Virus record (IMG/VR): IMGVR_UViG_3300028864_000016
Location: 1 to 64,000 of that record
DNA length: 64,000 nt
Direction: 5' to 3' (one strand)
Shown: positions 1,599-20,846 of the stretch, piece by piece
Position numbering within the stretch: the first letter of the stretch is position 1
Layout of the letters: each line of letters begins with the position of its first letter
Notes under the pieces: generated by a model
The model's input: only the letters and a program-made list of their open reading frames with translations
What the model was told of the DNA's origin: nothing
The model's database searches: none
Position numbers and translations under genes: made by a program

Positions 1599-1702
1599 TT
1601 TTTATTCCTCCTTAATATTAATTGATAATCATTTTCGTTTTAAAATATAAGTTTTAAGTAAATAAAAAAGAACCCTATTAATTAGAGTTCTTAATCATAT
1701 TT

Positions 1703-2509
1703 TTATAATTTTTCTTCCAACATCTTTTTAACTTTTTCAATATGTTTTTCGTCCATTGGTTTACCAGTTGTATTCAATTTAATGAAATATCTTAATTTTT
1801 GTTCCTCAGTTAAATTTTCTGATTCTCCCCATGATATAGAATGGTTTTCTATATAGTCTTGGTCTCTAGCCGATAAGTCACTAAATTTACATCCTTTATA
1901 TTCAAACCTATCTTCATAATATTCTAATAATGTAGTAAGTCTTTGTTTCCCATCTAGTACTTCATATTTATCTAGTATATAATCAGGTTTAATAAAAGTA
2001 AATTTTCCTATATCCACATTATTAAATATGCTATCTATTAGTGTAACTTTATCTTCTAAATCCCAGACTAAACCTCTTTGATATACTGGCTCTAATTCAA
2101 ATCCAAAATGATATGCATGGTTAAGTAACGAACCAATAGTTCTTTGGCTGTAATTGATTCTAACGTCGTCCTTTTTGGCAAATAATATTTTATTATTATT
2201 GAATTTTCTTATTTCTGTCCACATCCATACACCTTTACAATGTTCAGTAGTTATAGGATTTCCATAATTATTATTTATACTTGTATAGTCTACAACATAA
2301 AATTTTCCATCATCAATAATTTTATCTATTGTTGCATCTTTTAAATTTCCTATATTAACTTTATCACCTATGTTATATCTATAAGTAGGTTCTGGAATAT
2401 ATTCAAAATCTTCTTGTAGTCTTTTTAAATCACGTTCTACTTTCTCTCTTTGTTGTTCTTCAAATGTTAATTCTATCTTTTTAGTTTTCGCTTTAGCCAT
2501 TGTATCCAC
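1703..2509 (-). CDS. DUF262 (ParB/Srx-like, GmrS-type) domain protein with N-terminal extension
   Basis: PVYQRGLVW...LIDSI...VLDGKQRLTT...F.KLN motifs. Confidence 0.85.
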   Translation of the reverse strand: MDTMAKAKTKKIELTFEEQQREKVERDLKRLQEDFEYIPEPTYRYNIGDKVNIGNLKDATIDKIIDDGKFYVVDYTSINNNYGNPITTEHCKGVWMWTEIRKFNNNKILFAKKDDVRINYSQRTIGSLLNHAYHFGFELEPVYQRGLVWDLEDKVTLIDSIFNNVDIGKFTFIKPDYILDKYEVLDGKQRLTTLLEYYEDRFEYKGCKFSDLSARDQDYIENHSISWGESENLTEEQKLRYFIKLNTTGKPMDEKHIEKVKKMLEEKL

Positions 2510-2631
2510 TCCATTCTTATTATTTAATTATACTAAAATTTTATGTATCTGTCATTTCTTTATAGTGTAATATATTATTTTAATTTATTGTTGTAAATAA
2601 TATCCAGTTAAAACAAGGATTTGATTGGAAT

Positions 2632-2994
2632 TTAATTACTCATTAATGCTACATCATTCATAACACGTTTACCAAAATCAGTATTTTCAAACCCAATTTT
2701 TTCAGTTCTTTTCAATTCCTTTTTAATTTTTTCTTTATTTATTCTAAGCATATCTTCAATTCCTGTTTCTTCTTTTAATTCAATCTTATCAATTCCATTA
2801 TACAAATACGCTCCACCTAAACAACTCTTATCTTTTATCATTTCTACATTATTGATTTTTAATTTTCCCATTCCATATTTTAAAAATTGTCTAAACACTA
2901 TTTGTATAGAACTTTTTTCAGATTTACTAAATTTTTTAACTGGTTTACCATTCAACCATGCGTAATAATATATTCTATCCATAACATTTACCAC
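2632..2994 (-). CDS. Hypothetical protein
   Basis: ORF preceded by TTGACA-17-TATACT promoter (3054-3082). Confidence 0.7.
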   Translation of the reverse strand: MVNVMDRIYYYAWLNGKPVKKFSKSEKSSIQIVFRQFLKYGMGKLKINNVEMIKDKSCLGGAYLYNGIDKIELKEETGIEDMLRINKEKIKKELKRTEKIGFENTDFGKRVMNDVALMSN

Positions 2995-3322
2995 CTTTTA
3001 ATTTATTTTAATTTATATTGATTATGTATTTTCTCAACGTTTATCTTAATATTAGTATATCAGTTATATAAGGTACTGTCAACAAATTAATGTAATTGTT
3101 TTTAATAAAATAAGTTTTTTAATTGGATATTATTTATTCTATTTATAGGCTCATAGCTGAATTTTACTTATATAGGTGTAATTGTATTCCTTCATCCCTA
3201 ATAGTGCCTTAGAATCCATTCTGACGTTATAATATTGCAGTAAAATTATTTTTTCTTGTAGTAGTTAAAATAATAATAAAAGGAACTATAAAAAATTTTA
3301 TTTATAGTCCCTAAATCTATAT

Positions 3323-4087
3323 TTAATTAAATGACCAATTAGAAATGAATGTACTAGCTGAACCGAAAACAAGTGGGTTTAAATCCTTATAAGAAGAAAC
3401 CTCAAATTTTTCCGAAACATTAAGCCAAAGGTTTTTAAAATATTTTCTTGATTCTGTTTTATATAATTTACTATGTGCTCCACCTAAAATTGTACTTACT
3501 CTTTCTCTAGCTTGTTTTAATAACTTACTAGCTTGATAACTATTTATAGTTGAAACATCAATAAATGAATCTAATTTATTTTGTGTACTTGTTAATTTTT
3601 CTGTATTGTTAGTTATTTCATTTTTTAATTGTGATACTTCATTTTCTAATTTAACTATTTGACCTTTTAAACCAAAATCCTCAGCAAATTGTTCTTTCTG
3701 TTCATCAGTTTCAAAAAATGCTTTATAAAGAACATCTTTGCACTTTAGCTGATAATTTACTAATCTTTCAACCGCTTCTGGGTTTTCTTCTTTCATAGTT
3801 GGAGTTAGCGAAATCTTGGCAAGCCACAAAGTAACATAATATTCATGAATCGCAAATACATTTTGTTGACCTCCATTTGTAGGGAACGTCATATTTGTCA
3901 TACCCTTTGATAAAACCACGTCATTTTTGATATTTTTTATTTGCCTATCTGCTTGACCTATTGTTAATCCAATATCCGTACAAGCTTTCTTTACTCCTAG
4001 CCACACTTCTCCTTTGTTGTCTTTAATTCCTAAAATTTGTCCGCCTTCAAAGTCAATTAATTTTTGTTGTAATTTTTCTTTTTCCAT
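3323..4087 (-). CDS. Phage antirepressor-type protein (P22 Ant N-terminal-like domain, coiled coil, ORF6C-like C-terminus)
   Basis: VWLGVKKAC..IGL; TNGG.Q; LWLAKI; YQLKCKDVL..AF; C-terminal F.VSSYKDL. Confidence 0.8.
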   Translation of the reverse strand: MEKEKLQQKLIDFEGGQILGIKDNKGEVWLGVKKACTDIGLTIGQADRQIKNIKNDVVLSKGMTNMTFPTNGGQQNVFAIHEYYVTLWLAKISLTPTMKEENPEAVERLVNYQLKCKDVLYKAFFETDEQKEQFAEDFGLKGQIVKLENEVSQLKNEITNNTEKLTSTQNKLDSFIDVSTINSYQASKLLKQARERVSTILGGAHSKLYKTESRKYFKNLWLNVSEKFEVSSYKDLNPLVFGSASTFISNWSFN

Positions 4088-4175
4088 TTTATCATTCTCC
4101 CTTTATGTATTAATTTGTTAGCATATAATATGCTTGTATATAAGTACCATTCATAGATACTCATACGCCTACATA

Positions 4176-4421
4176 TTATATTTGCTCTTTAGTTGCTTTG
4201 TATACTGTTTCGTCAGGCTCGAATAATGTTAATCCTGCATTTAAAATACTTATAGCATTTACGTTGTTTGTTTTATAAAAATCTAAATCTTGTTGCAATA
4301 TCTTCATATATAATGTGCCACCACTATAGAAACACTCTTTATCCTCTATTGTATCGAAACGAACTTTTAAACCTATCTTTTCATATTTAATTATTGTTTT
4401 TACTACTTTCATTTTATACAC
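4176..4421 (-). CDS. Hypothetical protein
   Basis: 81 aa ORF in early array. Confidence 0.55.
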   Translation of the reverse strand: MYKMKVVKTIIKYEKIGLKVRFDTIEDKECFYSGGTLYMKILQQDLDFYKTNNVNAISILNAGLTLFEPDETVYKATKEQI

Positions 4422-4427
4422 CTCTTT

Positions 4428-4580
4428 CTATTTGACCATAAATCTATTATTAATATAATTTTGTTTGTTTTCACCAGGTAAAGCAGTAATTCCATTATTC
4501 ATATGTTTAATTAATTTTTCTTTTTGTTCTTCTGTGATTTCTATCCAACCTCTAAATAAAGATTTATACATTATTTTCAT
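4428..4580 (-). CDS. Small hypothetical protein (50 aa, not in ORF track)
   Basis: MKIMYKSLFRGWIEIT..., AAGGGG RBS. Confidence 0.6.
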   Translation of the reverse strand: MKIMYKSLFRGWIEITEEQKEKLIKHMNNGITALPGENKQNYINNRFMVK

Positions 4581-4593
4581 AATTATTCCCCTT

Positions 4594-4752
4594 TTATTTA
4601 TTTTCTTCTAGTAATTTCAACACTTCTTCTAATCCTTCACCCTTACCTACATAAAACCCTTCATCATAACCACTTGAAGAAGTTTTAATATGTTTATTTA
4701 CTTCTTCAAGCATTTCTTGAATTTCATTTATTAACTTATCAATTTTTTTCAT
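4594..4752 (-). CDS. Small hypothetical protein (52 aa, not in ORF track)
   Basis: MKKIDKLINEIQE...GYDEGFYVGKGEG, GAGGTG RBS in end of upstream gene. Confidence 0.6.
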   Translation of the reverse strand: MKKIDKLINEIQEMLEEVNKHIKTSSSGYDEGFYVGKGEGLEEVLKLLEENK

Positions 4753-4753
4753 A

Positions 4754-4939
4754 TTAATTCACCTCAGTTATTTTTCTATTATACATATCAACTAATTCTG
4801 GTTTTAAAAATCCCTTACAAGCTCCAATTCCATTTAATGCTCTTTTAACCCATTCTTTCTCAGTTATTTTATGTGGTGTTTTTAATTCATCTAATCTATA
4901 AATTTCTATTGCTAATTCTTTTCTTGTCATCTTAATCAA
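4754..4939 (-). CDS. Hypothetical protein
   Basis: 61 aa ORF with AAGGAG RBS. Confidence 0.65.
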   Translation of the reverse strand: MIKMTRKELAIEIYRLDELKTPHKITEKEWVKRALNGIGACKGFLKPELVDMYNRKITEVN

Positions 4940-5213
4940 TCTCCTTCATTCTTTTAATTTGTTTCAATCTTGTTTATTATGTATTTTACTTTAAAAGTTC
5001 CTCAAGCATTGCACTAGATTTAGTTTTCTGTCTTTACTTGATTGCTTAGAATTGTTTGTTCCTTGTCTATGTATTAAGTATATAATAAATTAATAGAAAC
5101 ATCAAGAAAATTCATTCGACAAAATTCTATTAAAACTGAGTTTTTATCAAGAGTTGATAATTATTTTCAATTACTAAGCTGATAAACAAAAAAGAGCTGA
5201 ATCTCTTCAACTC

Positions 5214-5522
5214 TTACATTTTATAAGGTAGCAAACCAATTAACTCATTTTTGTTTATTTCTATTTTAACATTGGTTGTAACTGGTTTCCATTCATTATT
5301 AATTTTTTGCTTCATATCTTCTGTTTGTCCAATCTCAATAATTCCATTTGCAAGATTCTTAATATATATCTTTTGGAATTTATTTTGTTCGATTATTGTG
5401 TCCTTTGAACTATTTAATAATGATCTTAAATCTTTTCTATCCATTAAGATTCCTTCTTCATCATTTAACCATATTCCTACCATGTCATTACTTCTAGTAT
5501 ATTCAATTTCAATATTATTCAT
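5214..5522 (-). CDS. Hypothetical protein
   Basis: AGGAG RBS, own promoter TTGACA-17-TATACT (5573-5601), downstream terminator. Confidence 0.75.
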   Translation of the reverse strand: MNNIEIEYTRSNDMVGIWLNDEEGILMDRKDLRSLLNSSKDTIIEQNKFQKIYIKNLANGIIEIGQTEDMKQKINNEWKPVTTNVKIEINKNELIGLLPYKM

Positions 5523-5705
5523 TTAAAATCACTCCTAAATATTATTTTTAATTTGTTTAACTTCTTGATACTAGTATATCAAATGTACACTTCATTGTCA
5601 ATGAATTAATAGAAGAAAGTTTAAATAAAAGTTGACTTTTAATTGGTTTTCATTCTCATTCAGTTATGGTCAAAAAGAAAAGGAACTATTAATATTAGTT
5701 CCTTA

Positions 5706-6113
5706 CTACCTAGTTATTTTTCTTCTTTCTTTTATATCTTTACTATTTGAATTGCAATAATGAAAATGATTTAGCCAATATAATAAATCACATATTACTT
5801 TATCTTTAATATTTATATTATTATAAAATTCATATTCTTCAAGTGCTAGTTGTATGTATTCAGCTAAGTCTTTGTAATTAATATTTTTATCTATTTCTTT
5901 TTTAATTATTCCTTCTTCTAAATCTTCATATATTGCTAACTTATCTATTAATCTTTGAAAATACTCTCCATCTGGACAATTAACTTTTAAATAGGCTTTT
6001 CCATTTAATATATTTGTTAATCTCTTTATTTTTATTGTATTAATAGAGTTGTTTTGTACTTTCTTTATATCTTTAGTTATTGAATCAGTAATATCACTAA
6101 TATCTAAATCCAT
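5706..6113 (-). CDS. Hypothetical protein
   Basis: AGGAGG RBS, terminator at 5672-5704. Confidence 0.7.
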   Translation of the reverse strand: MDLDISDITDSITKDIKKVQNNSINTIKIKRLTNILNGKAYLKVNCPDGEYFQRLIDKLAIYEDLEEGIIKKEIDKNINYKDLAEYIQLALEEYEFYNNINIKDKVICDLLYWLNHFHYCNSNSKDIKERRKITR

Positions 6114-6267
6114 CTGAATAACCTCCTTTAAGCTCGTAATTTGTAGCTTCTAAATATCCATCTATGAATTGTATACAAGTATTACATGGTTTTTGATTAC
6201 CATTTTGCTCACAGTATTTGCAATCTTCGCACAAATTCTCTGATATACTAAAACCTCCTTTTTTAAT

Positions 6268-6471
6268 TTAATACATATTTATGTCTTTAATGTCACAAAA
6301 ATTTAACCATGTTCCATCGTATCCAACATCAATTAATATCCAGTCATCTTTAATAAAATCAATAGATACTTGTTCAAAATTTTTACCACTCAACATTTCA
6401 ATATTAACTATATTTTTCACTTCAAAATATTTATTTTTAACTCTTAGCACTTCAACTTTTTCTACTATCAT
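6268..6471 (-). CDS. Hypothetical protein
   Basis: AGGAGG RBS. Confidence 0.6.
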   Translation of the reverse strand: MIVEKVEVLRVKNKYFEVKNIVNIEMLSGKNFEQVSIDFIKDDWILIDVGYDGTWLNFCDIKDINMY

Positions 6472-6726
6472 TCTATTTTTCCCTCCTTTCTAATAGTTTT
6501 AATCTTTTATTAATTAAATTCAGCTCATCAGTAAAATATTTAATTTGTCCTATATTCTTTAATTCTAATATCTATAGATTCATCGTATCCCACATCTTTT
6601 CCTCTAACACTTACTTGTTTAGATGTAATATTATTTCTTTTTAATTCTGCTCTTATACTTTATGCCTTTTCTTTTAAAGTTAATCTTTCCATGTTAAAGT
6701 ACCACCTTTTGAATTATATTTTATTT

Positions 6727-7065
6727 TTATTCCTCCATTAAATCTTTCATATTTTTATTTTTCAAAAATTCATCATTTTTAATTACATTTCCCCAATATA
6801 AATTCTCTCCACAGTTTGGACAATAATTACTTTTATACACTATTCTATTGCATTTACAACTTTTACATTCAAACCAATGAATGTATTCATCATCACTGAA
6901 ATAATATTTAATATTTACTTCAGTTTCGAACTTAATAGGTTTACATTCTATATATTCACTACACAATTTTGCATCTTTACAATTATGACAATTAAATCCT
7001 CGCCCTCTGCAATGTAGTCCTGTATCTTTTAAATCTTTATTCATATTTAAATTCCTCACTTTCAT
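6727..7065 (-). CDS. Cys-rich zinc-ribbon protein
   Basis: CHNC, CKSC, YCPNCG motifs. Confidence 0.7.
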   Translation of the reverse strand: MKVRNLNMNKDLKDTGLHCRGRGFNCHNCKDAKLCSEYIECKPIKFETEVNIKYYFSDDEYIHWFECKSCKCNRIVYKSNYCPNCGENLYWGNVIKNDEFLKNKNMKDLMEE

Positions 7066-7130
7066 TTATTATCATTTATTTTATTTTCAGATATTCATAA
7101 GCCTACATGTAATTTTAAGTTATATTTTGT

Positions 7131-7430
7131 CTATATTAGCTTTTGTCTTTTCATAAAATTTTTCACTTCTGAAACGTCCCAAATTTCTTTTTCCCATTCT
7201 CCAATATTTTTACTTAATGAAGCTTCTACATAATCAAACTCAACTGTAACTCCTTCTTTAATTAATTTATCAAGATATGAACCCTGTCTATATAATTCCA
7301 TTTGATACATGTTATTTTGACTATCTATGATAAATGTACCTACTTTATTTTTTCTAAAACATAGTTTTAAACCTTTTGTTTCTAACTCTGATATTATATT
7401 GTTAAAATTTACTGTAATATTTTTTTTCAT
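7131..7430 (-). CDS. Hypothetical protein
   Basis: AGGAG RBS with leader hairpin at 7448-7473. Confidence 0.75.
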   Translation of the reverse strand: MKKNITVNFNNIISELETKGLKLCFRKNKVGTFIIDSQNNMYQMELYRQGSYLDKLIKEGVTVEFDYVEASLSKNIGEWEKEIWDVSEVKNFMKRQKLI

Positions 7431-7592
7431 TGTAAAAACTCCTTTTCACCTTAACCGCCTTTCGGTCGGTGGTTTTTATATTCTGTTAATTTGTTTATGT
7501 ATTTCTTAATATTATAATATCATACCTATATATCAATTGCAAGAATTATTTTAATAAATTAATATAATAAAACATTACTTAAAATTCTTATT

Positions 7593-7862
7593 TTATTTAC
7601 TCTTATGTTTGTTATGTCTTTTTGATTGCTTTGACCAATGTGGTTTGCTATAATCATGGATTCCACATTCTTTACATTCATCCCATAATAATATTGTGCC
7701 GTCTTCCATCCAATCACCAATATTTAAATACTTACAATATCCAGATAACTGTTTATGTTTTGTTTTATTAAAACTTAACCATTTACAGGTTTTAATATTT
7801 TTATTTTCATAACAATAACAAGTATCTTTAGGTATCCATTTTTTCATTGCTCTTTTTTTCAT
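7593..7862 (-). CDS. Small Cys-rich protein
   Basis: CYCY, CKWL, YCKY, CKECG. Confidence 0.7.
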   Translation of the reverse strand: MKKRAMKKWIPKDTCYCYENKNIKTCKWLSFNKTKHKQLSGYCKYLNIGDWMEDGTILLWDECKECGIHDYSKPHWSKQSKRHNKHKSK

Positions 7863-8129
7863 AATTGATACTCCTTTAAGTATAATTTAATTTCATTATT
7901 TAATATATCAGTAGTCTTTATAATTCTAATGTCTGTATTAAACCTATCTAAAGTGATCCACTGGTCAAATATACAGTACTGATTATCTTTAACAAATATA
8001 TTTGCGACTTTTCTTATATCATTGTAATAATTTATATTATTATTTCTAAAAACTTATTCCTAAACCTTGCTTAATCTTATTTCTTCTCTACGTTCTTTGA
8101 GTAGATGTTTAAAATCACCATTTCAATCA

Positions 8130-8474
8130 CTTTTAATGAGTTTGATTCATCAACATAAATATTTTCATAGAAATCAACCTCAGCTTTTAAATTATCTTGT
8201 AAAGGTACTATAAATCTAAATTTACTTATTAAACTATTAGGTTGTCTATTTTTATATAAATCTTCATATGTATCTTTTGATATTTCAACTTCATACTCTT
8301 CTCTAATCTTATCACCTTTACTTTAACAGTTAAATAATATTGCCAACTATTAATTTCTCATATTCTTACTTCTGGTGTGTAAGATAAATAACTTTGTTTT
8401 ATTAATTTACTTGGATACAATATCCACATGTTTTCAACGTTTCCATTGAATAAAAACTTTCTTTCTATTTCCAT
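8130..8474 (-). pseudogene. Frameshifted CYTH-domain (triphosphate tunnel metalloenzyme) gene remnant
   Basis: Fragments MEIEKK, YLSYTPEVRI, YYLTVK, KGDKIREEYEVEIS, SKFRFIVPL, AEVDFYE lie in shifting frames with stops; left end approximate. Confidence 0.7.
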
Positions 8475-8608
8475 ATTATATACTCTCCCTTATTTTTATT
8501 TAAATAATCCATTTTTAATTTTGTTTTTTATATTACAAAACATCTCCTTATATTATTTATTTTATTTACAAAGGGTATACTACTATTAAATAATATACCC
8601 TTATATTT

Positions 8609-9076
8609 CTACCTGTTTGCAAATTCTGCTGGAATTAATGCTTTAAAATTAATGTATGTTCCAAAAAATACATGCATAGCACTTTTAATTTCTGATAAAC
8701 TTGGTTTTGATATATTATAAATATTTTCAATTGTATCAGCATCTGAATTATTTACATCTTCAAGAGTGTTAAAACCAGCTCTTTTTAATGTATTAAATGT
8801 TCTTTGGCTAATATATCCATCACTTAATAAATATTCCACGTTGTGAACATCTGACAATGTATATAATTTTGTTGATTTTCTAAAAGTCTTAGCAACTCCA
8901 CCGTTTTCTTTCCAGTGGCTTTTAAAACTTGAGAAATCACTTGCTAAGCGTACTGTTATAGATTTTTCAGTTTCTTTTTCAATTTTTATAACTTCAAATA
9001 AAAATCCATCTGTTTCTGGAATTTCCATTCCTACCTTTAATTCACTTGCATTTATTGTTATTATCATTATAATCAT
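8609..9076 (-). CDS. Protein with C-terminal RNA polymerase alpha-CTD-like domain
   Basis: ISQRTFNTLKRAGFNTLEDV...IYNISKPSLSEIK resembles RpoA CTD LSVR.YNCLKRAGINT...NLG.KSLEE. Confidence 0.8.
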   Translation of the reverse strand: MIIMIITINASELKVGMEIPETDGFLFEVIKIEKETEKSITVRLASDFSSFKSHWKENGGVAKTFRKSTKLYTLSDVHNVEYLLSDGYISQRTFNTLKRAGFNTLEDVNNSDADTIENIYNISKPSLSEIKSAMHVFFGTYINFKALIPAEFANR

Positions 9077-9142
9077 TCTCCTTTTTCTGCTTTAACTCCG
9101 TGTAGGTGAGTAGCTATTACTTATTAATTTATTTATATATTA

Positions 9143-9436: not shown

Positions 9437-9628
9437 TCTCCTTTTATAGTCATTTAAGACTTTTTTATATTTATTAATTTATTTCCTTGAGATAATAATA
9501 CTACGTTTTGATATGTTTGTCTATAGTTTTTAAACAAATTAATAAAATTATTTTTATATAAAACTTATGTTTTATCACTTCTTTAAATTGTGCCAAAATT
9601 TATAATCTATTTAATTTTCTCCTTATCA

Positions 9629-9814
9629 TTACCCATATATTTCATCAACTCCATAAAAGTCAAATTCTATTTCTGATAATTTGCCATCATATTTATCATA
9701 TTGTTTTGTATTTTCTAATATCTTCTTGACTTCCTCTAAAGATTCTGCTCTAATTAATAATATTTTTATGTCCCAAACTTCAAAACCAGTCTCTATATAC
9801 TTAAATAATTTCAT
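9629..9814 (-). CDS. Hypothetical protein
   Basis: 61 aa ORF in array orientation. Confidence 0.55.
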   Translation of the reverse strand: MKLFKYIETGFEVWDIKILLIRAESLEEVKKILENTKQYDKYDGKLSEIEFDFYGVDEIYG

Positions 9815-9893
9815 AAAAAATTCACTTCCTTTACCTTTTTATCTCATTTATGAGCTTATTGTAATCTATAATTTATTTAAAATTATATGTTGT

Positions 9894-10097: not shown

Positions 10098-10218
10098 TTA
10101 TTAATTTGTTTTACTTATTAATATAATTATATCAAATACGCTGAGAACTACAATGGTTTTTAAATAAATTAACAGAAAAACAATTCAACATATACTACTG
10201 AAATAATCATTTTATATA

Positions 10219-11825: not shown

Positions 11826-13544
11826 TCACACTGCAACTTGTTCTGATTTCTCTATTTCTGATAAATAATAATTTAATATTATTTTAGCATCTTTTAAAGT
11901 CGAACAACTACCCTTTTTAAAACTATTTCCATTTGCATCAACTGCAATAAAAGTTCCCCAAATATTTAATATATAATAATCTTGTGCATTTACTATAGTT
12001 ATATAAGCAGTTTTTTCAACCAAGTTACTACCTTGAAAATAATTATTTCCATTTGAAATTGATACATTAACTTGTTTTTTAATTCTCTTATATTCATATT
12101 CTTTTTTATTTGATAATACTGCATCAATAAACTTTTTATCTTTTTCTTTTATTATTTTACCTTTTATATCCCCTAGTTTGCTTTTATATTCACTCTCTAG
12201 TGCTATTAGCTCTCTCATTAAGTTATCGTGTCTAGAATTCATTTTAGCGTCTTTACGTGCATTTCTTCCGTCTCTACCTGTTGTCATCCAGCTTGGGTTG
12301 TCTGCATTATTTCTAAGTAGTTTATAATAATTTTCATAGTAACGTTTCTTATAACTATTTAACCATGATTTATATTTATTCTTAATTGAATTATCTTCTA
12401 ACTTATCTAATTCGATAATAAATTTATTTTGATAATTATTTAAATAATTTAATATTTCTTGTTGGTGGTCACGTTCTTTAGTTCTCATAACCCAATGACC
12501 ATCATTTTCTCTTTTGCTTATTTCTTTAGATATTAGAAAATTTTCAGCGTTTATATTATCAATGTTAATTTCTATTGGTTCAACTTCTTTTAACTCTGTT
12601 GTATTGATTGTATTATTTTCTTGTTGCCCTTCATTATTTAATAAACCTATTGATTGCAAAAATTGTTTCGCTTGCTCTGAGTCTTTAGTATACCAACATT
12701 TATTAAATTTTGCCCACCTGTAACCATTTGCTTTTAACTGATTTCTAATTTCTTCACTTGGTTTGTCATTGAAATATAATTCTATTCCGTTCTTTTCTGT
12801 ATTAAATTTAACTTCACAACCAATTTCATTGTTTATAGTTTGTTCTGTTGATTCTATTGTTATTTCTTGAATTGATTCAACTGCTGAAGTTTCTTTTGTT
12901 TCTGGTTCTGCAACAATTTCTATAACTTCAACTGGTTTAGATTCTTTTATTATATCACCTTTTTTAGTTTCTATTTTATTAAGAACTTCACAAACTTTTA
13001 TTATTTCTTGAGTTAATCCTATTGTGCAACTATATTCATTACCTGAAGAAATAGTTTGACCTTTTTTTCCTAATTCCTTGATATATATTGTTTTATTTTC
13101 TCTAAATTTAACTAACCATATAGTTCTATTTCCTATGTATTTTTCTCCAAAAGTTCCAAATTTAATTCCATTAGGAAATTTAATAATTGAACCATCTTTT
13201 ACTTCTTGATTTTCTGATTTTACAAATTCAATTACTACTTCTTCTGAGTTAATTCCATTTAAATACTCATTAACTTCCTTTTTAGCTTTCTTCAAATCAG
13301 TCACTATTTCTATATTCATATTTGGGTCATTTTTGATTGATTTTTCATTGTAAAAATAATATCTATATCCACCACTTTTTTCAGTTCCATCAAGTTTAAC
13401 TTTAATTAAGCAATATTCATTTTTTACTATTGAATATCTAGCATCTTTCTTTGTGTAATCGTGAGCTACAACATATATATCATTTTCGCCTTTAACTATA
13501 GTTCCTGTTAATTTAACAAATTGACCTTCTTGTAATTGTAACAT
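11826..13544 (-). CDS. Multidomain protein with polyvalent-protein-associated (LPD-like) domain
   Basis: NTEKNGIELYF.DKPSEEIR..LKANGYRW....KCWY motif common in phage/conjugative-element early proteins. Confidence 0.7.
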   Translation of the reverse strand: MLQLQEGQFVKLTGTIVKGENDIYVVAHDYTKKDARYSIVKNEYCLIKVKLDGTEKSGGYRYYFYNEKSIKNDPNMNIEIVTDLKKAKKEVNEYLNGINSEEVVIEFVKSENQEVKDGSIIKFPNGIKFGTFGEKYIGNRTIWLVKFRENKTIYIKELGKKGQTISSGNEYSCTIGLTQEIIKVCEVLNKIETKKGDIIKESKPVEVIEIVAEPETKETSAVESIQEITIESTEQTINNEIGCEVKFNTEKNGIELYFNDKPSEEIRNQLKANGYRWAKFNKCWYTKDSEQAKQFLQSIGLLNNEGQQENNTINTTELKEVEPIEINIDNINAENFLISKEISKRENDGHWVMRTKERDHQQEILNYLNNYQNKFIIELDKLEDNSIKNKYKSWLNSYKKRYYENYYKLLRNNADNPSWMTTGRDGRNARKDAKMNSRHDNLMRELIALESEYKSKLGDIKGKIIKEKDKKFIDAVLSNKKEYEYKRIKKQVNVSISNGNNYFQGSNLVEKTAYITIVNAQDYYILNIWGTFIAVDANGNSFKKGSCSTLKDAKIILNYYLSEIEKSEQVAV

Positions 13545-13601
13545 ATCAATCTACCTCACTTCAATTATTTTAATTTGTTTACTTGTTCCCTATGTATCTA
13601 T

Positions 13602-13619
13602 TATAAGTCACGACTTATA
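13602..13619. promoter_or_regulatory. Palindromic operator TATAAGTC-AC-GACTTATA overlapping -10 of minus-strand promoter
   Basis: Palindrome; second copy TAAGTCATGACTTA at 14492-14505 in the same register to its -10. Confidence 0.7.
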
Positions 13620-13678
13620 TATCTGTCAATAACTTTTTTAATAAATTAATAGGATTATTTAAATATATTTTTTATTGC

Positions 13679-13876
13679 TTATAGATTGTTATATTTACGT
13701 GCTTTAACTTCTTTTATTAATTCCTCAATATCCTGTATATCTTCAAATGTTGCTTTATTCTTAATAAAACTTTTACAAGCTGATTTACTTTTTGTATAAT
13801 TAACTTTATCCTTGTTCTTATCTTCCCATGCCTTAACTGCTTGTAATTGTGCCTTAGATGTTTTTATACCCTCCAT
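13679..13876 (-). CDS. Small basic putative DNA-binding regulator
   Basis: KTSKAQLQAVKAWEDKNK...ACKSFIK pattern typical of small phage regulators. Confidence 0.6.
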   Translation of the reverse strand: MEGIKTSKAQLQAVKAWEDKNKDKVNYTKSKSACKSFIKNKATFEDIQDIEELIKEVKARKYNNL

Positions 13877-13985
13877 TATTTAAACCTCCTTACATGGTCT
13901 TATATAGTCTTTATTTGCTTATATAATTATAATAGTATTGTTACATATTTGTAAAGAAAAAGAAGCTTCTCAGCCTCCTATCTTA

Positions 13986-14246
13986 TTAATCAATAAACCC
14001 TTCTAACATTAATATTATTCCATATAACGCTTTTCTTTTTTCCTCAATTGAATTTGTATCGTTTAAACCATTAAAACAACTTCTATAATATTCTAATACT
14101 TCTACTGCTTCATTATTGTTTATTTCATTTATTAAGTCGTTCTTAAATTCTTCAATATTACCTTTGTAATAAAATACTAACCCTTCTTTAAAATTGCTTT
14201 CATATTTTACTATTTCATTTACTACCGCCATATTATTTTTCTTCAT
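13986..14246 (-). CDS. Hypothetical protein
   Basis: AGGAG RBS. Confidence 0.65.
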   Translation of the reverse strand: MKKNNMAVVNEIVKYESNFKEGLVFYYKGNIEEFKNDLINEINNNEAVEVLEYYRSCFNGLNDTNSIEEKRKALYGIILMLEGFID

Positions 14247-14739
14247 TTTAATCGACTCCTTTAATATTAATTAATTTATTATGTAAGTAGGTTATATTCT
14301 ATTTAATATATAACCATGAAAATATTTTAGCTTTAGCAACTTGATCTTTTAACATTCTTTGTAACTCTTCTGCTTTAACTTCTTTGATTGTTCTATCCTT
14401 GTAGACTATAACTGCCATAAATATCATTCTCCTTTAAATTTATTAATTTGTTTTACTTGTTGCTAAGTTCCCTTAGCTGATAATATAATTATAAGTCATG
14501 ACTTAGATTTTGTAAAAGTTAATTTAAGGTTATTTGGGATTGTTTATAACAAATTAATAGAGTTATACTTTGTTTATCTCTTAATATCTCCGTTTTACTA
14601 TATTTTTAATTTTATTTTATCTTAATTTATTGATAAAAGAGTTGTTTTAAAGCAATATTGATTATTAGTATCATTTATAAAAATGCAAAAAAGAAAACTG
14701 GATTTTACTCCAGCTTCATCATATTTTTATTTAATTGTT

Positions 14740-15027
14740 TTATATTGCTTTTAAAAGTTTATTTTCTTCAATTTCATTTTTGAATTTCTCAATTATATCT
14801 GGATAATCTTTTAAAACTTCATTAGATACGTTTAACCCTGTCCATATTGCATCCATTATAGCAACTTTGTGTTTTGCTATCTCTGTTTGTATTCTTGTTC
14901 TTATCCATCCTTCTGGTTTTTCTATTTGGTCTAACCATATTTCTTTTTTATGTTCGCTTAAAGTATTATAAATACCATTTAAATATTCTTTCTTAGTAAC
15001 TTCAAATATATTTTTCATATTAATCAT
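14740..15027 (-). CDS. Hypothetical protein
   Basis: AGGAG RBS, terminator 14687-14717. Confidence 0.65.
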   Translation of the reverse strand: MINMKNIFEVTKKEYLNGIYNTLSEHKKEIWLDQIEKPEGWIRTRIQTEIAKHKVAIMDAIWTGLNVSNEVLKDYPDIIEKFKNEIEENKLLKAI

Positions 15028-15713
15028 TCTCCTTTTAATTTATTATTTATCTAATCCACCATTTTTAACACAATATTCTTTTATAATTTCCTGTGCCTTC
15101 TTATGAGCGTCTTCTAATTCTCCAGTATGTAATTGGTCTCCATTCTTTAGTGAAAACAGTACAAATTCTATTGTTTGCATTGCGTTTGTTAATTCTTTAA
15201 TATCCATATTTATAACCACCTTATCTTTTATTTTATATTAATTTGTTTTCTTGAATTAATAATACCACTTTTTAATATTCCTGTCTATAGTTTTTAACAA
15301 ATTAATATAAAAAGTTTTGATAAAAGGTGGTTTTTATTGGAAGTTAATATTTGTTAATTTATTAAAAATCCAATTATCTGACCGTAAGGGAAGAAAAGCG
15401 TAGCGGTAGCTACAAGACTGTTATCCACTAAATGTTGTATTATCACCTAACGCCCTAACGGTTGTTCTTTTGCTCGTCTTTCAGACTTCACAAATAGAAT
15501 TGATTTATTTAATTGAAAAAGTGCCTATTTTAGTTAATATATATTATTACTTTTATATATATTCTATTTAACAGACACCACCTTCAACCCTAGTCATAGA
15601 GCCATTCTTTTTTGATTTTATAACTTCTCACTCTTTTAATTTGTTTAATTGTATTTGTTTTAATATGTAAAATCCTTTTATTTCTTTATATTTTAATTTA
15701 TTTTATAACTTTT

Positions 15714-16955
15714 TTAAGAAAATAGGTTATAAAAATTTTCATCTTCAAGCCATAATGTTAATAAGTTTCTCATTCTCTTTGATGGAATATAAATTGTAAT
15801 AGGTTCATAACGTCTTATTCTGCTTCTCCATAGCCATTGTATTAATTCACTTAAAGCATATAAGTCTTGATTGATTGTAATGTCTTTAGACTTAAAGAAC
15901 TGGTCTATAAAAGGCTGATTAAATATATTAATGCAATAAGCTAAATTATATCTTTCTACATAATCATTAGTTGCTCTTAGGTTACAAGCAATAAATCCTT
16001 TTGTATATCCTTTTCCTTTTAACTTACTTTGTTGATCTTTAAAGGTTGTCCATAATACAGTATCACTTTTTGCTTTTAGTTTATTGATAAAGAAATTTGT
16101 TATATTGCTTTTTAATTGTTTAACGCTTTCTTTGTTAGTATCATTTCTAAACCAACTATGACTTAAATTATAATATTCTTCACCTACTGCATTAAGTTTT
16201 TCATCATCCATAAACGTTATATTTTCTTTTAACTTATCCTTTACTTCTTTTTCAATAAGTTTGTAGTTGTCATCTTTAGATTTAATTACATATGTATTCA
16301 ATTTATTTAGATTAGCATAATAGTATTCGTATTTGATACCATTCATTTGATAATAATAACATTGTTCCTGAGCTTCAAATAAGTAAGTCAATATGTAAGC
16401 ATCTTTAAAAGCTTTGAATATTTCAACTGGAAACATCCATATAAGTATTACATCTTTATAAACTATTATACTTTTGTTTATTGCTAAGTATTTAATATTT
16501 TCAAAAGCTCCGGTATATTCTTTTTGTTCATTCCATATTAGATAATCATTTTCAATTTTTGCATAACCATCATTTATTATCATGTTAACATCATTCTTAC
16601 TTATATTACATTGCTCTATAACGTTAAATACTTCATCAAGGATTAATATATAATCATTACTTTTTAATAGTTCTACAGTCTGCATATTAGCTTTATGAAA
16701 TAGTGCATGAGTACTTACAATATTTTTACCTTCTGATATTAATTTGTTTAAGTTGTCAAATTTGTTACCGTGTTGATTATATTTAGGTTCTTGGAATCTT
16801 CTTGACTTACAATTCTTTTTAACTCTTTCAACTTCACTTAAAAACGGTGTAATATAAATATACTTATTGTTTGTTGTGTCATGATTAATCATATTTATAA
16901 TTGCACTTGTTTTTCCACTTCCCGGTATTGAATCTACTATCTTAATTCTACACAT
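15714..16955 (-). CDS. Superfamily 2 helicase-like protein (SPbeta YonV-like)
   Basis: Walker A PGSGKTS, ITPFLSE, ILDEV, motif VI-like QWLWRSRIR. Confidence 0.75.
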   Translation of the reverse strand: MCRIKIVDSIPGSGKTSAIINMINHDTTNNKYIYITPFLSEVERVKKNCKSRRFQEPKYNQHGNKFDNLNKLISEGKNIVSTHALFHKANMQTVELLKSNDYILILDEVFNVIEQCNISKNDVNMIINDGYAKIENDYLIWNEQKEYTGAFENIKYLAINKSIIVYKDVILIWMFPVEIFKAFKDAYILTYLFEAQEQCYYYQMNGIKYEYYYANLNKLNTYVIKSKDDNYKLIEKEVKDKLKENITFMDDEKLNAVGEEYYNLSHSWFRNDTNKESVKQLKSNITNFFINKLKAKSDTVLWTTFKDQQSKLKGKGYTKGFIACNLRATNDYVERYNLAYCINIFNQPFIDQFFKSKDITINQDLYALSELIQWLWRSRIRRYEPITIYIPSKRMRNLLTLWLEDENFYNLFS

Positions 16956-17274
16956 TTGTTTTATTCTCCTTTTTAGTTATTATTAAATGATTCCAATTGT
17001 CGTTAGTAACTTTTTTATATTCCATATTATAGCCTTCTAAATGATTTATAACTTCATGTATTTTATTACGGTTTAACTCTTCCCATAGTTGAGATTGTTC
17101 CTCCTTATTGAGTTCTACATTTAAATACTTTTCTATAATTGGTATATATTTTTCATATGTTTTTAACTTTTCTAAAGCAATTATACATTGTATCTTAAAC
17201 CTTGTTCCTTCTAATGCTTTAATTTGTAATTCTAATAAGTTAACTTGTTCTTGTAATTCATTAATATTAATCAT
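16948..17274 (-). CDS. Hypothetical protein
   Basis: RBS, overlaps start of helicase gene. Confidence 0.65.
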   Translation of the reverse strand: MININELQEQVNLLELQIKALEGTRFKIQCIIALEKLKTYEKYIPIIEKYLNVELNKEEQSQLWEELNRNKIHEVINHLEGYNMEYKKVTNDNWNHLIITKKENKTNV

Positions 17275-17291
17275 TATATTTCTCCTTTCTT

Positions 17292-17681
17292 TTATATATT
17301 GAATGGTGTTTCTTTGTAATTATCTAGTACAATATTAATATATTTCTTATCTGCTGAATAAATAATGTCATAGTTTTCAAAATATAAGTTATTCATTTCA
17401 AATACATTCTTATAATCTAATAATCCATCCTTAGATATCATTGATCTAACTGGATATATTACTAATTTGTCTAATGTCCAATTTTGTGCTAACATGAATC
17501 TGAATCTTTTATTCTTCTTATCATAGTATAAAATATCTTGTGTCAATATATCTACTCCATATTGTAAAGGCATTTTGTCAGCAAATATAATATATTTTCC
17601 TTTCTTTAATTCACTAACTATATGTAATATACTTGTTAGTTGAGTCATTTTAATATTGTTGAATTCTTTAATTTTTATCAT
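17292..17681 (-). CDS. Hypothetical protein
   Basis: AGGAG RBS. Confidence 0.65.
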   Translation of the reverse strand: MIKIKEFNNIKMTQLTSILHIVSELKKGKYIIFADKMPLQYGVDILTQDILYYDKKNKRFRFMLAQNWTLDKLVIYPVRSMISKDGLLDYKNVFEMNNLYFENYDIIYSADKKYINIVLDNYKETPFNI

Positions 17682-17841
17682 TTTTCATTCTCCTTTTATT
17701 CTATTAATTTATTAATAATATTACTTTAAGAGTTACAACTCCAATATTTTTTGAAGCTATAACTCTTTATCTATATTAACCACTTAAAGTGGATTGTACT
17801 ATATTTATTTATATTAAATAGATTTTTAATTATTTAGCTGA

Positions 17842-18084
17842 TTAAAATTTAATTTCAATTGGTTTTAAGTCAGTTTCATTGAAAAAACCACCTGCTATTG
17901 AACCATCCTTAAATATAGTAAAATTCATCACACCTTTATGATATATACGTGGTATAGTCATAATTATATTGCCTATAGAATTAATTTTGTAAGTGATTTT
18001 ATTTAAGTCATACCCCTTATTTTCAGCTCTGTTTAATACTTTCTTAATTTGATTTTTAATTGATTCATTAATCATCTTAATCAA
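17842..18084 (-). CDS. Hypothetical protein
   Basis: RBS and leader hairpin 18097-18124. Confidence 0.65.
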   Translation of the reverse strand: MIKMINESIKNQIKKVLNRAENKGYDLNKITYKINSIGNIIMTIPRIYHKGVMNFTIFKDGSIAGGFFNETDLKPIEIKF

Positions 18085-18125
18085 TTCCTTTCAACTGCCT
18101 TAACCTCTAAAACTAGTAGGTAGCT

Positions 18126-18380
18126 TTATTTTATATTTTCTATTACTTCTAGTTTTAATTCACTATTTAATAAATATTTTACAGTCATTTCAAATGGATA
18201 TGGACTACTTGAATCTTGAAATTTGATTTTATCTTCATTAACTTCTAACACTAAAGCTAATTTCTTAGTTTCGTCTTCTTGTAAATCTTCTTCATCTTCA
18301 AATTTTAAAAGTTCTTTTGTATAGTCTATTAAAACATTATCACCTTTTTGGATTTTGCTAATTAATTCTTTTTTATTCAT
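18126..18380 (-). CDS. Hypothetical protein
   Basis: RBS and own promoter. Confidence 0.65.
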   Translation of the reverse strand: MNKKELISKIQKGDNVLIDYTKELLKFEDEEDLQEDETKKLALVLEVNEDKIKFQDSSSPYPFEMTVKYLLNSELKLEVIENIK

Positions 18381-18502
18381 TTTAAAAACTTCCTTTCATT
18401 CCGTTAATTTGTTTATGTACTTCTTATCTCTTATATTATACTATATGGATATTGAAGTCAAGCTATTTATTTTTAGTTCTTTTAATTTGTTTTAATTATA
18501 TA

Positions 18503-18754
18503 CTATTCACATACTCTATATAAAGTATTATCATTAAAGAATTCAATGTCCAATTCTTTTAATTCTTGTATTATAAAATACTTTATATCCTCATTAACAT
18601 TCCAGTTAAACAACTCACTAACATTATAATAGATTCCACCATTATAAGTTAATTGGTTTCTTATAGCTCTTGCAGTTGATTCAATATTGTTATTAAAGTT
18701 CTTATACTCTTCTTTAGTCATGTTATTATCTTTACAGTATTTTGCCATACTCAT
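18503..18754 (-). CDS. Hypothetical protein
   Basis: GAGG RBS; downstream of long structured leader. Confidence 0.65.
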   Translation of the reverse strand: MSMAKYCKDNNMTKEEYKNFNNNIESTARAIRNQLTYNGGIYYNVSELFNWNVNEDIKYFIIQELKELDIEFFNDNTLYRVCE

Positions 18755-18799
18755 ACCATATAACCTCTTTTACTTCATGTTAATTTGTTTTAAGTTTGG

Positions 18800-19104
18800 T
18801 ATTATTGTTAAGTTTCTAACCACTATCTTAACTGGCATTCGTATCTAATACCCTTGACACGCTTGTTTTATTTTATACTAGACTATATAAGTTCACGTCT
18901 CGGACTCACCTCATATAACTCATTTTTGTTCGGTCTAGTAGGATAGCTTATTCTGGTCTCCTGTCCAGAAATGGTTTTTTCAGTTAAAACCGTTATTCTA
19001 AAAACTATAGCTTTTTTGTTTAAGAAAGCCTAAAACTGCTATGTAACTCTTACACACTTGAGAGATTATTTTTTACAAGTGGTTAACTTATATCTTGTCT
19101 ACAT
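18800..19104 (-). ncRNA. Putative ~300 nt structured ncRNA or 5' leader
   Basis: Promoter TTGACG-17-TATAAT (19110-19138); ends pair (19078-19089 with 18810-18824); internal stems TACTAGAC/GTCTAGTA and TTCTGG/CCAGAA; locally GC-richer and ORF-free. Confidence 0.55.
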
Positions 19105-20846
19105 CTATTATTATATATTAATTTGTTTATATCGTCAATACCTTTTTTATAGTTTTCTTAATTTATTTAAAATATATTTTTGAACTTATTTAATATTTAT
19201 TATAGTTACATTTATATAGTTTATTTGTATTATCTTTTATAATAGCTCTAATGGATTATATAAGCCGTTAAACTGGTTTTATAATATAATTATATTAATA
19301 CTCTATTAGTTCCAATATAATATAGCTATTAGAGTTTATATGACGTTATACTACTTTAGTTATGCAATTGTATTGTTATATAGTTAGTTGGTTATATAAT
19401 CTTATTCTATACTTATATCATTTGTAGTTCTTATATATGTTAGTATAGATTATAGATATATAGTTTCATTATATAGTATTGCTATAAGTTCTATTGTATT
19501 GTATAGTAGTTTACTATGTTGATGCATAAGAGTTCTAAAATGGTTTTATAATTGATCCTGATATATTAGTTACTTACTTATAATATGTATTCATTCCAGT
19601 TAATATATATTAGACACTTATATAATATTGCATTGTTAGTTATTAATAAGTTATGCCTTATATAGTCTTTATGTTAGGTTATAACGTTGTTAGTAATGCA
19701 ATTATAAGTGTTAATATATAAGCGTTGTATGAGTTTGTTAGGATTGTTATAATAGATATTACTATAATACAATGGTATCATATTGTTATTACTGCTTTAT
19801 ATAGATAGTTATTCAATATAGTTTCTAGATGTTAGTTGCATTATGATATTCTTATTAGTTTATATAGTTTTATATGTGATATACTATTTAATTATATATG
19901 TTATACTAATAGATTGAATATCGTTAATATTGTATACTTTATGTTAGTTATGGTTTGTTTAGTGTATACTATTGTAGTTGTGTATGATATATTAATGGCA
20001 TTGTATTAGTGTTTATATTATACAGTTTGTTGTTGAATGTTTATATATGTTATACTTTATATGTATTGTGATATACTATAAGTGTTATAACAACCTCAGT
20101 TGCTTTAAAACGAAAAATAAACCAGTAAATTCAATAATAGTTCGTATTTTAAAAATCAGACCTTGACCAGTTCCCTATCGTATGAGTAGATAAAAGATTG
20201 ATTTTAAGAATAGATATGTAACATTTGATACAATATGAGCATGATAATATCTAACATAAATCAGTAATTATATGCAAACAAGTTATATATGTACTATATT
20301 AAATATACATTTAGTGAAGTTGGTTTGTAACCGTTTGTATGACTAGCTTTGCAGGTTTTAATGTGCTAAAAAGTGGTATTTTTATGGTTTAGTTGTGTGG
20401 TTTATTGGATATAATTGTGCTGGTTTGTATGCTTATAGGTATAGGGGGGCGTGTTTTACATTTTAGTGTTCATTTGCTGAACGTAATAGTGCCACATCAC
20501 ATTATGTCGGATATGGAGGTTGGATTTTGACGATAGCATAAAAACACGAACATTAACCATTTTTAACATCGTTAAAGCAATCGTCGAGGCTTGTCATACC
20601 AACATGTTGAACTATTTAAAAATTAAAAATTTGAACATATTATCTATTAGATAATCCTCGAACCAAGTCATACCAACCTATAGAACGATACATACTAACA
20701 AACTTATAAATATAAGTAATCTTAAATACGCATTAACTACCCTTAACCTATTGATATCACAAGCCTAAGACCAATTATTTACATACAATAAAAAGAGACG
20801 CACTACTTGTCCTTATCGTACATCTCTAATTTCCAATTTATATATT

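Follow-up and report, generated by a model that had tools for sequence, protein, structure and literature searches.

A spacing-specific palindrome as candidate operator-like seam of exchangeable early gene cassettes in a Clostridium-type phage

Large phages possess long arrays of small accessory genes with a very fast turnover, and the orderliness of this turnover is poorly understood. Two described systems come closest to the locus treated here. In T4-type phages shuffling is mediated by the so-called PeSLs, each a promoter joined to a terminator (PMC2839356, PMC4122927), and SPbeta-like phages possess a master repressor, known as MrpR, YopR or SroF (PMC10516654; bioRxiv 10.1101/2025.11.27.690993). 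MrpR displays a recombinase fold, is catalytically dead and binds ten dispersed SPBRE sites in promoter regions (PMC10516654), and SroF has many sites across the genome (bioRxiv 10.1101/2025.11.27.690993). In the present study the first 64 kb of the 218,173-bp peat viral contig IMGVR_UViG_3300028864_000016 (hereafter the window, i.e., the whole stretch of DNA that was analyzed) were investigated with regard to the palindrome TAAAA-N6-TTTTA. Judged by analogy to these systems, the palindrome may well be an operator-like seam element of a repeated regulatory cassette and at the same time, as the PeSLs of T4, a favoured crossover point.

The window shows a G+C content of 25.5%, with genes on the minus strand up to ~28 kb (left arm) and on the plus strand beyond (right arm). 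It belongs to a 218-kb phage of Clostridium type with a temperate or plasmid-like lifestyle, relatives of which are present in Clostridium beijerinckii assemblies, among them as an element of GCA_013407245.1, and the early region of this phage is an array of small autonomous transcription units. The contig ends were joined via a 219-kb assembly of the same phage (L141, L178; L numbers denote individual sequences compared), and 90 kb contiguous of this phage were covered by the counts.

Like T4-type phages with PeSLs, the phage displays hyperplastic early regions of small ORFan genes, a repeated terminator stem-loop and strong host-type early promoter before each gene, and insertion or replacement junctions between close relatives that fall in the cassettes. 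However, phage lineage and host are different, a strict 16-bp palindrome and the motif AAYAAATTAAT are found here, and junctions concentrate at the edges of short blocks instead of lying anywhere in the cassette. The likeness to SPBRE and MrpR comprises a large temperate Firmicute phage with a protein of tyrosine-recombinase fold, whose best structural matches are SroF, YopR and MrpR, the gene order of integrase, YopQ-position gene and MrpR-like gene with a MazF link, an antirepressor-like gene, and dispersed inverted-repeat sites in promoter regions. Read directly in SPbeta (..ACAAATACAAAWAATATGTATA.., containing the inverted repeat ATACA-N7-TGTAT), SPBRE is placed just before ribosome-binding sites or against a -35, and the same two placements were encountered here. 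The differences are that ATACA-N7-TGTAT is part of a 15-26 bp asymmetric box, whereas TAAAA-N6-TTTTA is symmetric with a free spacer; that at least 21 putative binding sites in 90 kb stand against 10 in SPbeta; and that a link to mosaic junctions is not described for SPBRE in PMC10516654 or bioRxiv 10.1101/2025.11.27.690993.

Spacing, arms and cassette context of the palindrome

The palindrome occurs 13 times in the window, while each other spacing from 0 to 15 gives 1-5 copies; dinucleotide shuffles yielded 3.47±1.77 (standard deviation) N6 copies, and none of 100 reached 13. Eleven of the 13 copies are intergenic, i.e., situated in the 23% non-coding part of the window, with 0-3 copies at other spacings. 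In the 90 kb of this phage 21 N6 copies stand against 1-6 at other spacings, in ~150 kb of the phage group 42 against 2-9, and the loci with the MrpR-like gene in seven related phages all display an N6-specific excess (4-9 copies vs 0-3). A sequence-only reading of the window, made by a model from the letters and open reading frames (ORFs), had proposed possible recombination sites of an integron-like gene-shuffling system and had asked for such an N6-specific enrichment, which was confirmed; its nine perfect left-arm copies as well as those at 42273, 45675 and 50372 in the right arm were all recovered, and one more perfect copy was found at 24368 (Table 1).

The outer T and A of the arms are required, as arms with AAAAA, CAAAA or GAAAA are depleted at N6. 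Compensated symmetric arm variants were absent from the ~150 kb of the phage group, hence base identity is selected and not pairing. Conservation is confined to TAAAA/TTTTA, and the flanks vary, save that some of the sites have CCAAT on one side; the extended arm ATTGG described earlier is real, but present on one side only. The one-mismatch copies of the sequence-only reading (2609, 10199, 10656, 13659, 14582, 41114) do exist, yet the whole class of matches with no or one mismatch shows no enrichment (49 observed, 61±8 expected), so that near-copies count through context only, namely a position 9-26 nucleotides (nt) downstream of an inverted AAYAAATTAAT motif. The spacers of the 21 copies in this genome are all different, which chance alone explains (~0.4 collisions expected). 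A spacer is kept at orthologous sites and differs between sites, homologous downstream modules may carry different spacers, and 16-mers that are identical down to the spacer turn up again in different phages, where their contexts are diverged or unrelated. A strict, symmetric, spacing-specific and pairing-independent sequence indicates a DNA-reading protein, and from these properties TAAAA-N6-TTTTA is most likely a candidate site of sequence-specific protein recognition.

Three other identities were rejected. A hairpin or RNA-structure model was ruled out by the weak folds of the palindromes as single-strand hairpins (-0.5 to -3.9 kcal/mol) together with the absence of compensated arm variants, and a restriction-modification target by reasoning, the site being over-represented rather than avoided. 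An identity with Xer/dif or Tn916 targets was dismissed, because the outer arms are not conserved; the polarity of Tn916 targets is opposite (T-run, N6, A-run).

Promoters and terminators given here are consensus predictions. In gene sense, left-arm sites are located 12-160 nt past the end of the preceding unit, given by its stop codon or predicted terminator, and a predicted terminator precedes six of the perfect copies at this distance (10 terminators found vs 2.2 expected). The first three bases of the palindrome, TAA, are the stop codon of several unrelated upstream ORFs, one of them an integrase gene. After the palindrome, at 14-17 nt, follows an ATTAATTTRTT block, which is AAYAAATTAAT inverted and adjoins the -35 of a sigma-A-type promoter close to consensus, either directly or at ~10 nt; AAACAAATTAA is found ~10-20 nt after the -10 and is followed by the ribosome-binding site. 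For nine to ten of the 11 strongest left-arm promoters a copy, perfect or nearly so, precedes the -35 at a variable distance of 11 to 65 nt, and the promoter modules share a similarity of 73-85% among themselves and with their counterparts in the relative L002. Two suppositions of the sequence-only reading, self-contained units and about one site per junction in the left arm, agree with these own sigma-A-like promoters and terminators and with the copies at 9-10 of 11 promoters and after six terminators.

AAYAAATTAA is the most over-represented word of the window (85 copies); most start codons of both arms are preceded by it at 19-31 nt in sense orientation, and it also stands before a non-coding element. 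On the strand of the motif the order is AAYAAATTAAT, 13-19 nt, palindrome and often (A/T)TTGG, a composite seen at ~20 of 41 non-redundant sites. A palindrome follows 9 of 15 antisense copies vs 7 of 70 sense copies of the motif (Fisher P=8e-5). In the right arm, in L079 and in the sequence beyond the window start the composite was found in gene sense, the palindrome between motif and ribosome-binding site, and many palindromes have no upstream motif. The C-variant of AAYAAATTAA(T) fits the late-promoter pattern AACA-N6-TA of AR9 (PMC5312081).

Mosaic junctions between co-circulating relatives

Variants and relatives were gathered by exact-protein look-ups and collection scans, which provided many near-identical peat variants and several moderately diverged phages. 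L004, L016, L039, L078, L079 and L080 came from a viral-collection scan for AAATTAAT-N10-18-palindrome, where the matches listed were mostly single chance ones. Scanned with the helicase, the genome collection gave no match and the metagenomes only one relative, 41% identical and without the motif.

L002 shares only two blocks with the window, 14650-10654 (in L002 orientation) at 99.9% identity and 1157-1 at 91% identity; the genes between them are unrelated, and still the regulatory modules retain their similarity of 73-85%. Of the three observable block ends, one coincides with the 5' edge of palindrome 14634, one follows palindrome 10656 at 0-2 nt, and one is at the 5' edge of the near-palindrome 1142-1157. 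Across samples these junctions display two, three to four, and three alleles, respectively, and left and right alleles assort independently. An independent comparison of L178 with L184, left of the window, revealed six more block ends: a pair coincides with the 5' edge of perfect palindromes, another pair follows near-palindromes by 1 and 4 nt, and the remaining two lie at the AATAAATTAAT edge and within the first codons of a gene. Additional junctions were found after ATTAATTTATT, after a leader motif, in the N-terminus of a gene and in a hairpin region. Among near-identical environmental variants, seven of the 13 sharp junction loci lie no more than 4 nt from the edge of a palindrome with at most one mismatch, where 4% were expected for junction-eligible sequence (binomial P=2.5e-7); the junction set is small and partly from the same population. 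Ten of the 13 coincide with a palindrome or an AAYAAATTAAT/ATTAATTT motif, one lies in an intergenic hairpin and two in gene N-termini. The sites are preferred crossover points where co-circulating relatives exchanged cassettes, as the sequence-only reading had anticipated for breakpoints between relatives.

Contig loose ends of more distant relatives occur at many conserved blocks and not mainly at palindromes. In the Logan contigs of four DNA runs many joints are matches of repeated promoter modules, with loose ends at several conserved blocks, and no clean excision or circle evidence was found in these assembled contigs. The sequence was encountered in none of the RNA runs. The Logan peat contigs also hold relatives 10-30 times more abundant than this phage, sharing promoter modules only, and some contigs join halves of different modules (window 13600-13870 and the modules at ~10157 and ~14493). 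Among the variants, a 572-amino-acid (aa) primase-like gene (window 11826-13544, minus strand) is called with 601 aa in the environmental L159 and L161-L164, with a shorter intergenic gap and an alternative C-terminus, and beyond the window start one variant carries a TnpB gene (OrfB_IS605/Cas12f-like; L140 20470-20765), where L141 has other genes.

Candidate binding proteins and readings of the site

Two proteins to the left of the window are of interest. A canonical XerC/D-type integrase (L178:1830-2774; Pfam PF00589 at 1.9e-32 and a SAM-like N-terminal domain) is encoded in the same genome ~6.8-7.7 kb left of the window start and is conserved in all palindrome-bearing relatives; the sequence-only reading, in which no recombinase was visible, had advised to look for one elsewhere in the genome, and it was encountered just outside the window. 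The second, an MrpR-like protein of 385 aa (L178:10001-11155), is encoded ~15 kb left of the window start and possesses the MrpR core-binding domain MrpR_N_CB (PF22822 at 6.8e-8, above cut-off); its homologues carry MrpR_C_cat (PF22823) and are annotated as integrase or XerC/D in their sources. Its AlphaFold model (pLDDT 77.8) had 9rd5, 9rgl, 8bj6 and 8a0a as top Foldseek matches, the best structural matches being phi3T SroF bound to DNA, the SroF-Sar complex, YopR and MrpR (E 6e-8 to 9e-7), while active recombinases match only from E 4e-4. An alignment to SPbeta YopR by hhalign was colinear, with the near-invariant F358 at the place of YopR Y304 and an E-value of only 0.019, and by hhalign the family was not related to the canonical integrase. 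No significant match to SPbeta YopR was obtained with BLASTP, so that the link to YopR is carried by Pfam and structure, and identity to SPbeta-family repressors is 12-18%. The Arg-I position of the family, as read from the A2 consensus, is apparently not conserved, and the protein appears to possess no nucleophilic tyrosine. An HTH_3 protein is encoded at L178:4585-4953. The order of integrase, YopQ-position gene, MrpR-like gene and MazF/PemK-like toxin is kept in seven relatives, represented by contigs of L176-L184 and by Ga0311351_10000009 and including a Clostridium beijerinckii assembly.

The place of the palindrome at the head of nearly every early unit, together with an SPbeta-type repressor module, fits a joint operator of many cassettes. 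The site would be the upstream seam of a repeated regulatory cassette, consisting of terminator or stop codon, palindrome, 14-17 nt, inverted AAYAAATTAAT, sigma-A-like promoter, sense AAACAAATTAA leader and ribosome-binding site, and each early unit would carry its own copy as an operator, which would place all units under the joint control of a single phage protein. The foremost candidate binder is the MrpR/YopR/SroF-like recombinase-fold repressor, and the sites would then be analogous to the SPBRE sites of SPbeta. The position of every junction at a short island common to otherwise unrelated cassettes (16-mer, 11-mer motif, first codons) favours an exchange through islands: recombination would proceed, PeSL-like, through the 16-mer and less often AAYAAATTAAT, and selection would then retain only units bringing their own operator.

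The dimeric repressor, named as an alternative in the sequence-only reading, gains strong support by analogy from this repressor and the about ten dispersed inverted-repeat sites of SPbeta. Comparable operators of dimeric regulators are TGTGA-N6-TCACA of CRP and the ComK box AAAA-N5-TTTT, with half-sites of 4-5 bp one helical turn apart, a symmetric reader and a position upstream of promoters; their sequences differ from the palindrome, ComK has N5 instead of N6, and no CRP- or ComK-family protein was identified here.

Five observations weigh against the joint operator. The box bound by monomeric SroF is asymmetric and 24-26 bp long, whereas the palindrome is a symmetric 5-N6-5; a distance of 11 to 65 nt to the -35 is unusual for a simple repressor of those promoters; and an operator blind to its spacer does not predict that orthologous sites keep theirs. 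Edge-exact junctions with up to 3-4 alleles are, moreover, more precise than ordinary homologous recombination along 100-nt modules, and in the sibling L184 the same palindrome is used with an MrpR-like allele only 34% identical, which weakens the assignment of this specific binder.

The alternative that survives best, though doubtful, regards the palindromes as true site-specific recombination sites serving cassette exchange, not an integron. A phage tyrosine recombinase, either the XerC/D-type integrase ~7 kb to the left or the MrpR-like protein if still active, would bind the arms and exchange at the spacer boundaries, and co-infecting relatives would swap cassettes at sites with matching or tolerated spacers. 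Inverted arms around strictly 6 bp fit recombinase geometry, and tyrosine recombinase core sites are known as 13-8-13 (loxP) or 11-6-11 (dif), with which the palindrome shares inverted arms, a 6-bp spacer differing by site yet kept at a given site, and junction positions compatible with exchange at a spacer boundary. Known tyrosine recombinases, however, use arms of 9-13 bp, only 5 bp per arm are conserved here, and catalysis is hypothetical. Seven of 13 junctions belong to the sites, with the break exactly on the outer palindrome edge, the spacer being inherited with one side or the other, and since the arms are identical, an exchange at one spacer boundary would look exactly like an outer-edge junction, but AAYAAATTAAT edges and the first few codons of genes also harbour junctions. 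The TAA of the palindrome frequently terminates the upstream ORF, orthologous sites retain their spacer, and all 21 spacers in the genome differ, the latter being expected by chance as well (~0.4 collisions). The canonical integrase of all palindrome-bearing relatives would be expected anyway in a TubZ-encoding phage of temperate or plasmid-like lifestyle, where it would serve integration or the resolution of dimers, the MrpR-like protein apparently has no nucleophilic tyrosine, and no hybrid sites, circles or deletion joints were seen in assembled contigs. Single-nucleotide precision, recurrence of the same edge, spacer conservation and the canonical integrase keep the model alive. Recombinase catalysis at the sites, compatible with the edge junctions, nevertheless appears rather unlikely from the sequences, and equally so a spacer-addressed version, in which a phage tyrosine recombinase or a still-active 'repressor' would exchange at one boundary and relatives would swap cassettes at defined addresses in a natural phage-borne recombinase-mediated cassette exchange; in the prophage, the cassettes might in addition be silenced by this very pair of protein and site.

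The palindrome array is not an integron. It resembles one in the one-orientation array of gene units separated by palindromic sites, which sometimes overlap the stop codon of the preceding ORF, and in the tyrosine recombinase encoded by the genome. However, the units bear their own promoters and terminators, while integron cassettes are promoterless and depend on a common Pc; the sites are 16 bp long and fold weakly, in contrast to the imperfect hairpins of attC (57-141 bp) with R''/L''-L'/R' boxes; and the XerC/D-type integrase is ~7 kb away from the nearest site of the window, with ordinary genes between and no attI/Pc platform. Of the integron-like shuffling in the sequence-only reading, the gene-replacement junctions at the sites remain, whereas the label fails on these differences and on junctions at other blocks.

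It is quite unlikely that the palindrome is a phage-specific transcription element, i.e., a sequence that is transcribed initially or acts as a pause/termination signal, situated 14-17 nt past AAYAAATTAAT promoters and serving to stop antisense transcription from the early-promoter modules. The distance to the motif is fixed on the same strand, and 9 of 10 antisense copies in left-arm modules have a palindrome, while sense copies precede ribosome-binding sites instead, but many palindromes occur without the upstream motif. A promoter-like behaviour is suggested by the motif before a conserved non-coding element and by AACAAATTAATA, which fits the AR9 late-promoter pattern AACA-N6-TA (PMC5312081), yet neither a phage RNA polymerase nor a phage sigma factor was found in the sequence parts scanned. 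Perfect DNA symmetry without pairing covariation argues for a dimeric DNA binder, and the junctions would be left unexplained. Least probable of all is an upstream A-tract bend or UP-like booster of sigma-A promoters, read by the C-terminal domain (CTD) of the host alpha subunit or by the alpha-CTD-like phage protein (8609-9076), since A4 and T4 tracts one helical turn apart upstream of strong promoters and the retained equivalents of R265 and N268 are opposed by the strictly required flanking T and A, with AAAAA, CAAAA and GAAAA arms depleted at N6, by the long and variable distance to the -35, by sites directly before ribosome-binding sites and after a non-coding RNA, and by the loss of the G296 and K298 equivalents in the phage protein.

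Further features of the window and their significance

Proteins encoded in the window comprise a TubZ-like tubulin, an antirepressor-like protein, a MerR-type helix-turn-helix (HTH) protein, several homing-endonuclease-like proteins and the RNA-polymerase alpha-CTD-domain protein (Table 1). The TubZ-like and MerR-type genes at the divergence point of the two arms suggest a plasmid-like or segregating prophage lifestyle, and the antirepressor-like gene is consistent with a repressor/antirepressor circuit. The best PDB matches of the alpha-CTD-like protein are alpha-CTD structures of Bacillus subtilis, and it is a secondary candidate binder of the A-tract arms. Three free-standing homing-endonuclease-like ORFs could act as added drivers of local gene conversion.

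Palindrome 20191 lies within a stretch of ~2 kb (18850-20850) without an ORF of at least 50 aa on the coding strand, and is followed by TCTACT, as is a palindrome at L016 9666. Palindrome 45675 and the adjacent skipping-rope RNA belong to a 420-nt intergenic region with G+C-rich stems. At the place orthologous to palindrome 50372 the relative L004 has motif and non-coding element without the palindrome, and the homology with L078 stops at the 3' edge of this palindrome. The candidate non-coding RNA next to it shows 87% conservation in a relative, where a stem has changed in a compensatory manner from CAGC/GCTG to CATGC/GCATG, and had no Rfam match at the gathering threshold.

Table 1: Features of the window, and of other sequences where a handle is given, that bear on the palindrome and its surroundings
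Feature	Position	Strand	Remark
Perfect palindrome	1641..1656		12 nt after terminator 1692-1668, 42 nt before ATG of ORF 1155-1598
Perfect palindrome, gene-sense spacer AACTTA	3106..3121		CCAAT flank on upstream side; identical 16-mer in L002, L016
Perfect palindrome	5131..5146		46 nt after terminator 5215-5192; homologous downstream module in L016, other spacer
Perfect palindrome (GTCAAC)	5626..5641		39 nt after terminator 5704-5680; 24 nt before -35 at 5601
Perfect palindrome (TAAGAA)	7580..7595		Same 16-mer and homologous promoter module at L002 10154
Perfect palindrome (CATAAG)	9559..9574		35 nt before -35 at 9523
Perfect palindrome (CAACTC)	14634..14649		Gene-sense 5' edge is sharp mosaic junction, 2 upstream alleles
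Perfect palindrome (ACCACC)	15321..15336		63 nt after terminator 15414-15399; same 16-mer in L002, L122
Perfect palindrome, uncertain role	20191..20206		Within ORF-poor 2-kb stretch
Perfect match inside 770-aa ORF	24368..24383		Probably chance copy
Perfect palindrome	42273..42288		TAA is stop codon of ORF 41721-42275; 7 nt after sense AAATTAA motif
Perfect palindrome	45675..45690		6 nt after skipping-rope RNA 45591-45669
Perfect palindrome	50372..50387		Between sense AATAAATTAAT and conserved non-coding element
One-mismatch copy (gene-sense TAAAATCTAAATGTTA)	1142..1157		5' edge is sharp junction, 3 upstream alleles; TAA is stop of ORF 1155-1598
One-mismatch copy	2609..2624		11 nt upstream of -35 at 2597
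One-mismatch copy	10199..10214		26 nt after inverted motif at 10164
One-mismatch copy (gene-sense TAAAGTTAGTATTTTA)	10656..10671		Gene-sense 3' edge is sharp junction, 3-4 downstream alleles
One-mismatch copy	13659..13674		9 nt after inverted motif at 13641; upstream of consensus promoter at 13629
One-mismatch copy	14582..14597		24 nt after inverted motif at 14549
One-mismatch copy	41114..41129		18 nt after sense motif at 41087
Palindrome TAA as ORF stop	1155-1157, 42273-42275; L002 13112-13114; L177 4908-4910		
Sigma-A-like early promoter, TTGACA-17-TATACT with TG	3054..3082	-	Consensus match
Equivalent sigma-A-like promoters	5601-5573, 9523-9495, 10619-10592, 11795-11767, 13629-13600, 14516-14488, 15287-15259, 19138-19110		
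Predicted intrinsic terminator of upstream unit	3281..3312	-	
Further predicted terminators	1692-1668, 5215-5192, 5704-5680, 14717-14694, 15414-15399, 1128-1106		
AAYAAATTAAT pointing away from downstream gene	3082..3091	+	15 nt before palindrome, abuts other-strand -35
Equivalent AAYAAATTAAT copies	5085, 7554, 9534, 10164, 10631, 13641, 14549, 15297		
Sense AAYAAATTAA(T), examples	4962, 5556, 10109, 18412	-	
Sense AAYAAATTAA(T), examples	34582, 35695, 51674, 60404	+	
Antirepressor-like gene (P22_AR_N and ORF6C)	3323..4087	-	Domain matches
RNA polymerase alpha C-terminal domain gene	8609..9076	-	155-aa protein (called gene 152 aa)
TubZ-like tubulin gene	26903-27988	-	At divergence point of the two arms
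MerR-type HTH gene	28761-29459	+	At divergence point of the two arms
Free-standing homing-endonuclease-like ORFs (three)	31656-33062, 42934-43947, 47651-48667	+	HNH, NUMOD1, intron-encoded-nuclease PHROGs
Skipping-rope RNA	45591-45669	+	Rfam RF02924, 61.6 bits
Candidate structured non-coding RNA, terminator at end	50395-50530	+	L004 about 7100-7290 (reverse strand)

A single strict 16-bp site marks the seams of the array studied here, at which natural variants from numerous peat samples have exchanged genes with single-nucleotide precision. Should a master repressor with recombinase fold use this site as its operator, control of the SPbeta type would reach the jumbo phages of Clostridium, and it would be explained why each cassette must bring its own site, namely for silencing in the lysogen. 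If recombination is catalyzed at the sites, they would represent a new cassette-exchange system and possibly provide useful orthogonal sites. With either reading, gene regulation and the modular evolution of phages are connected here in a concrete way that can be tested.

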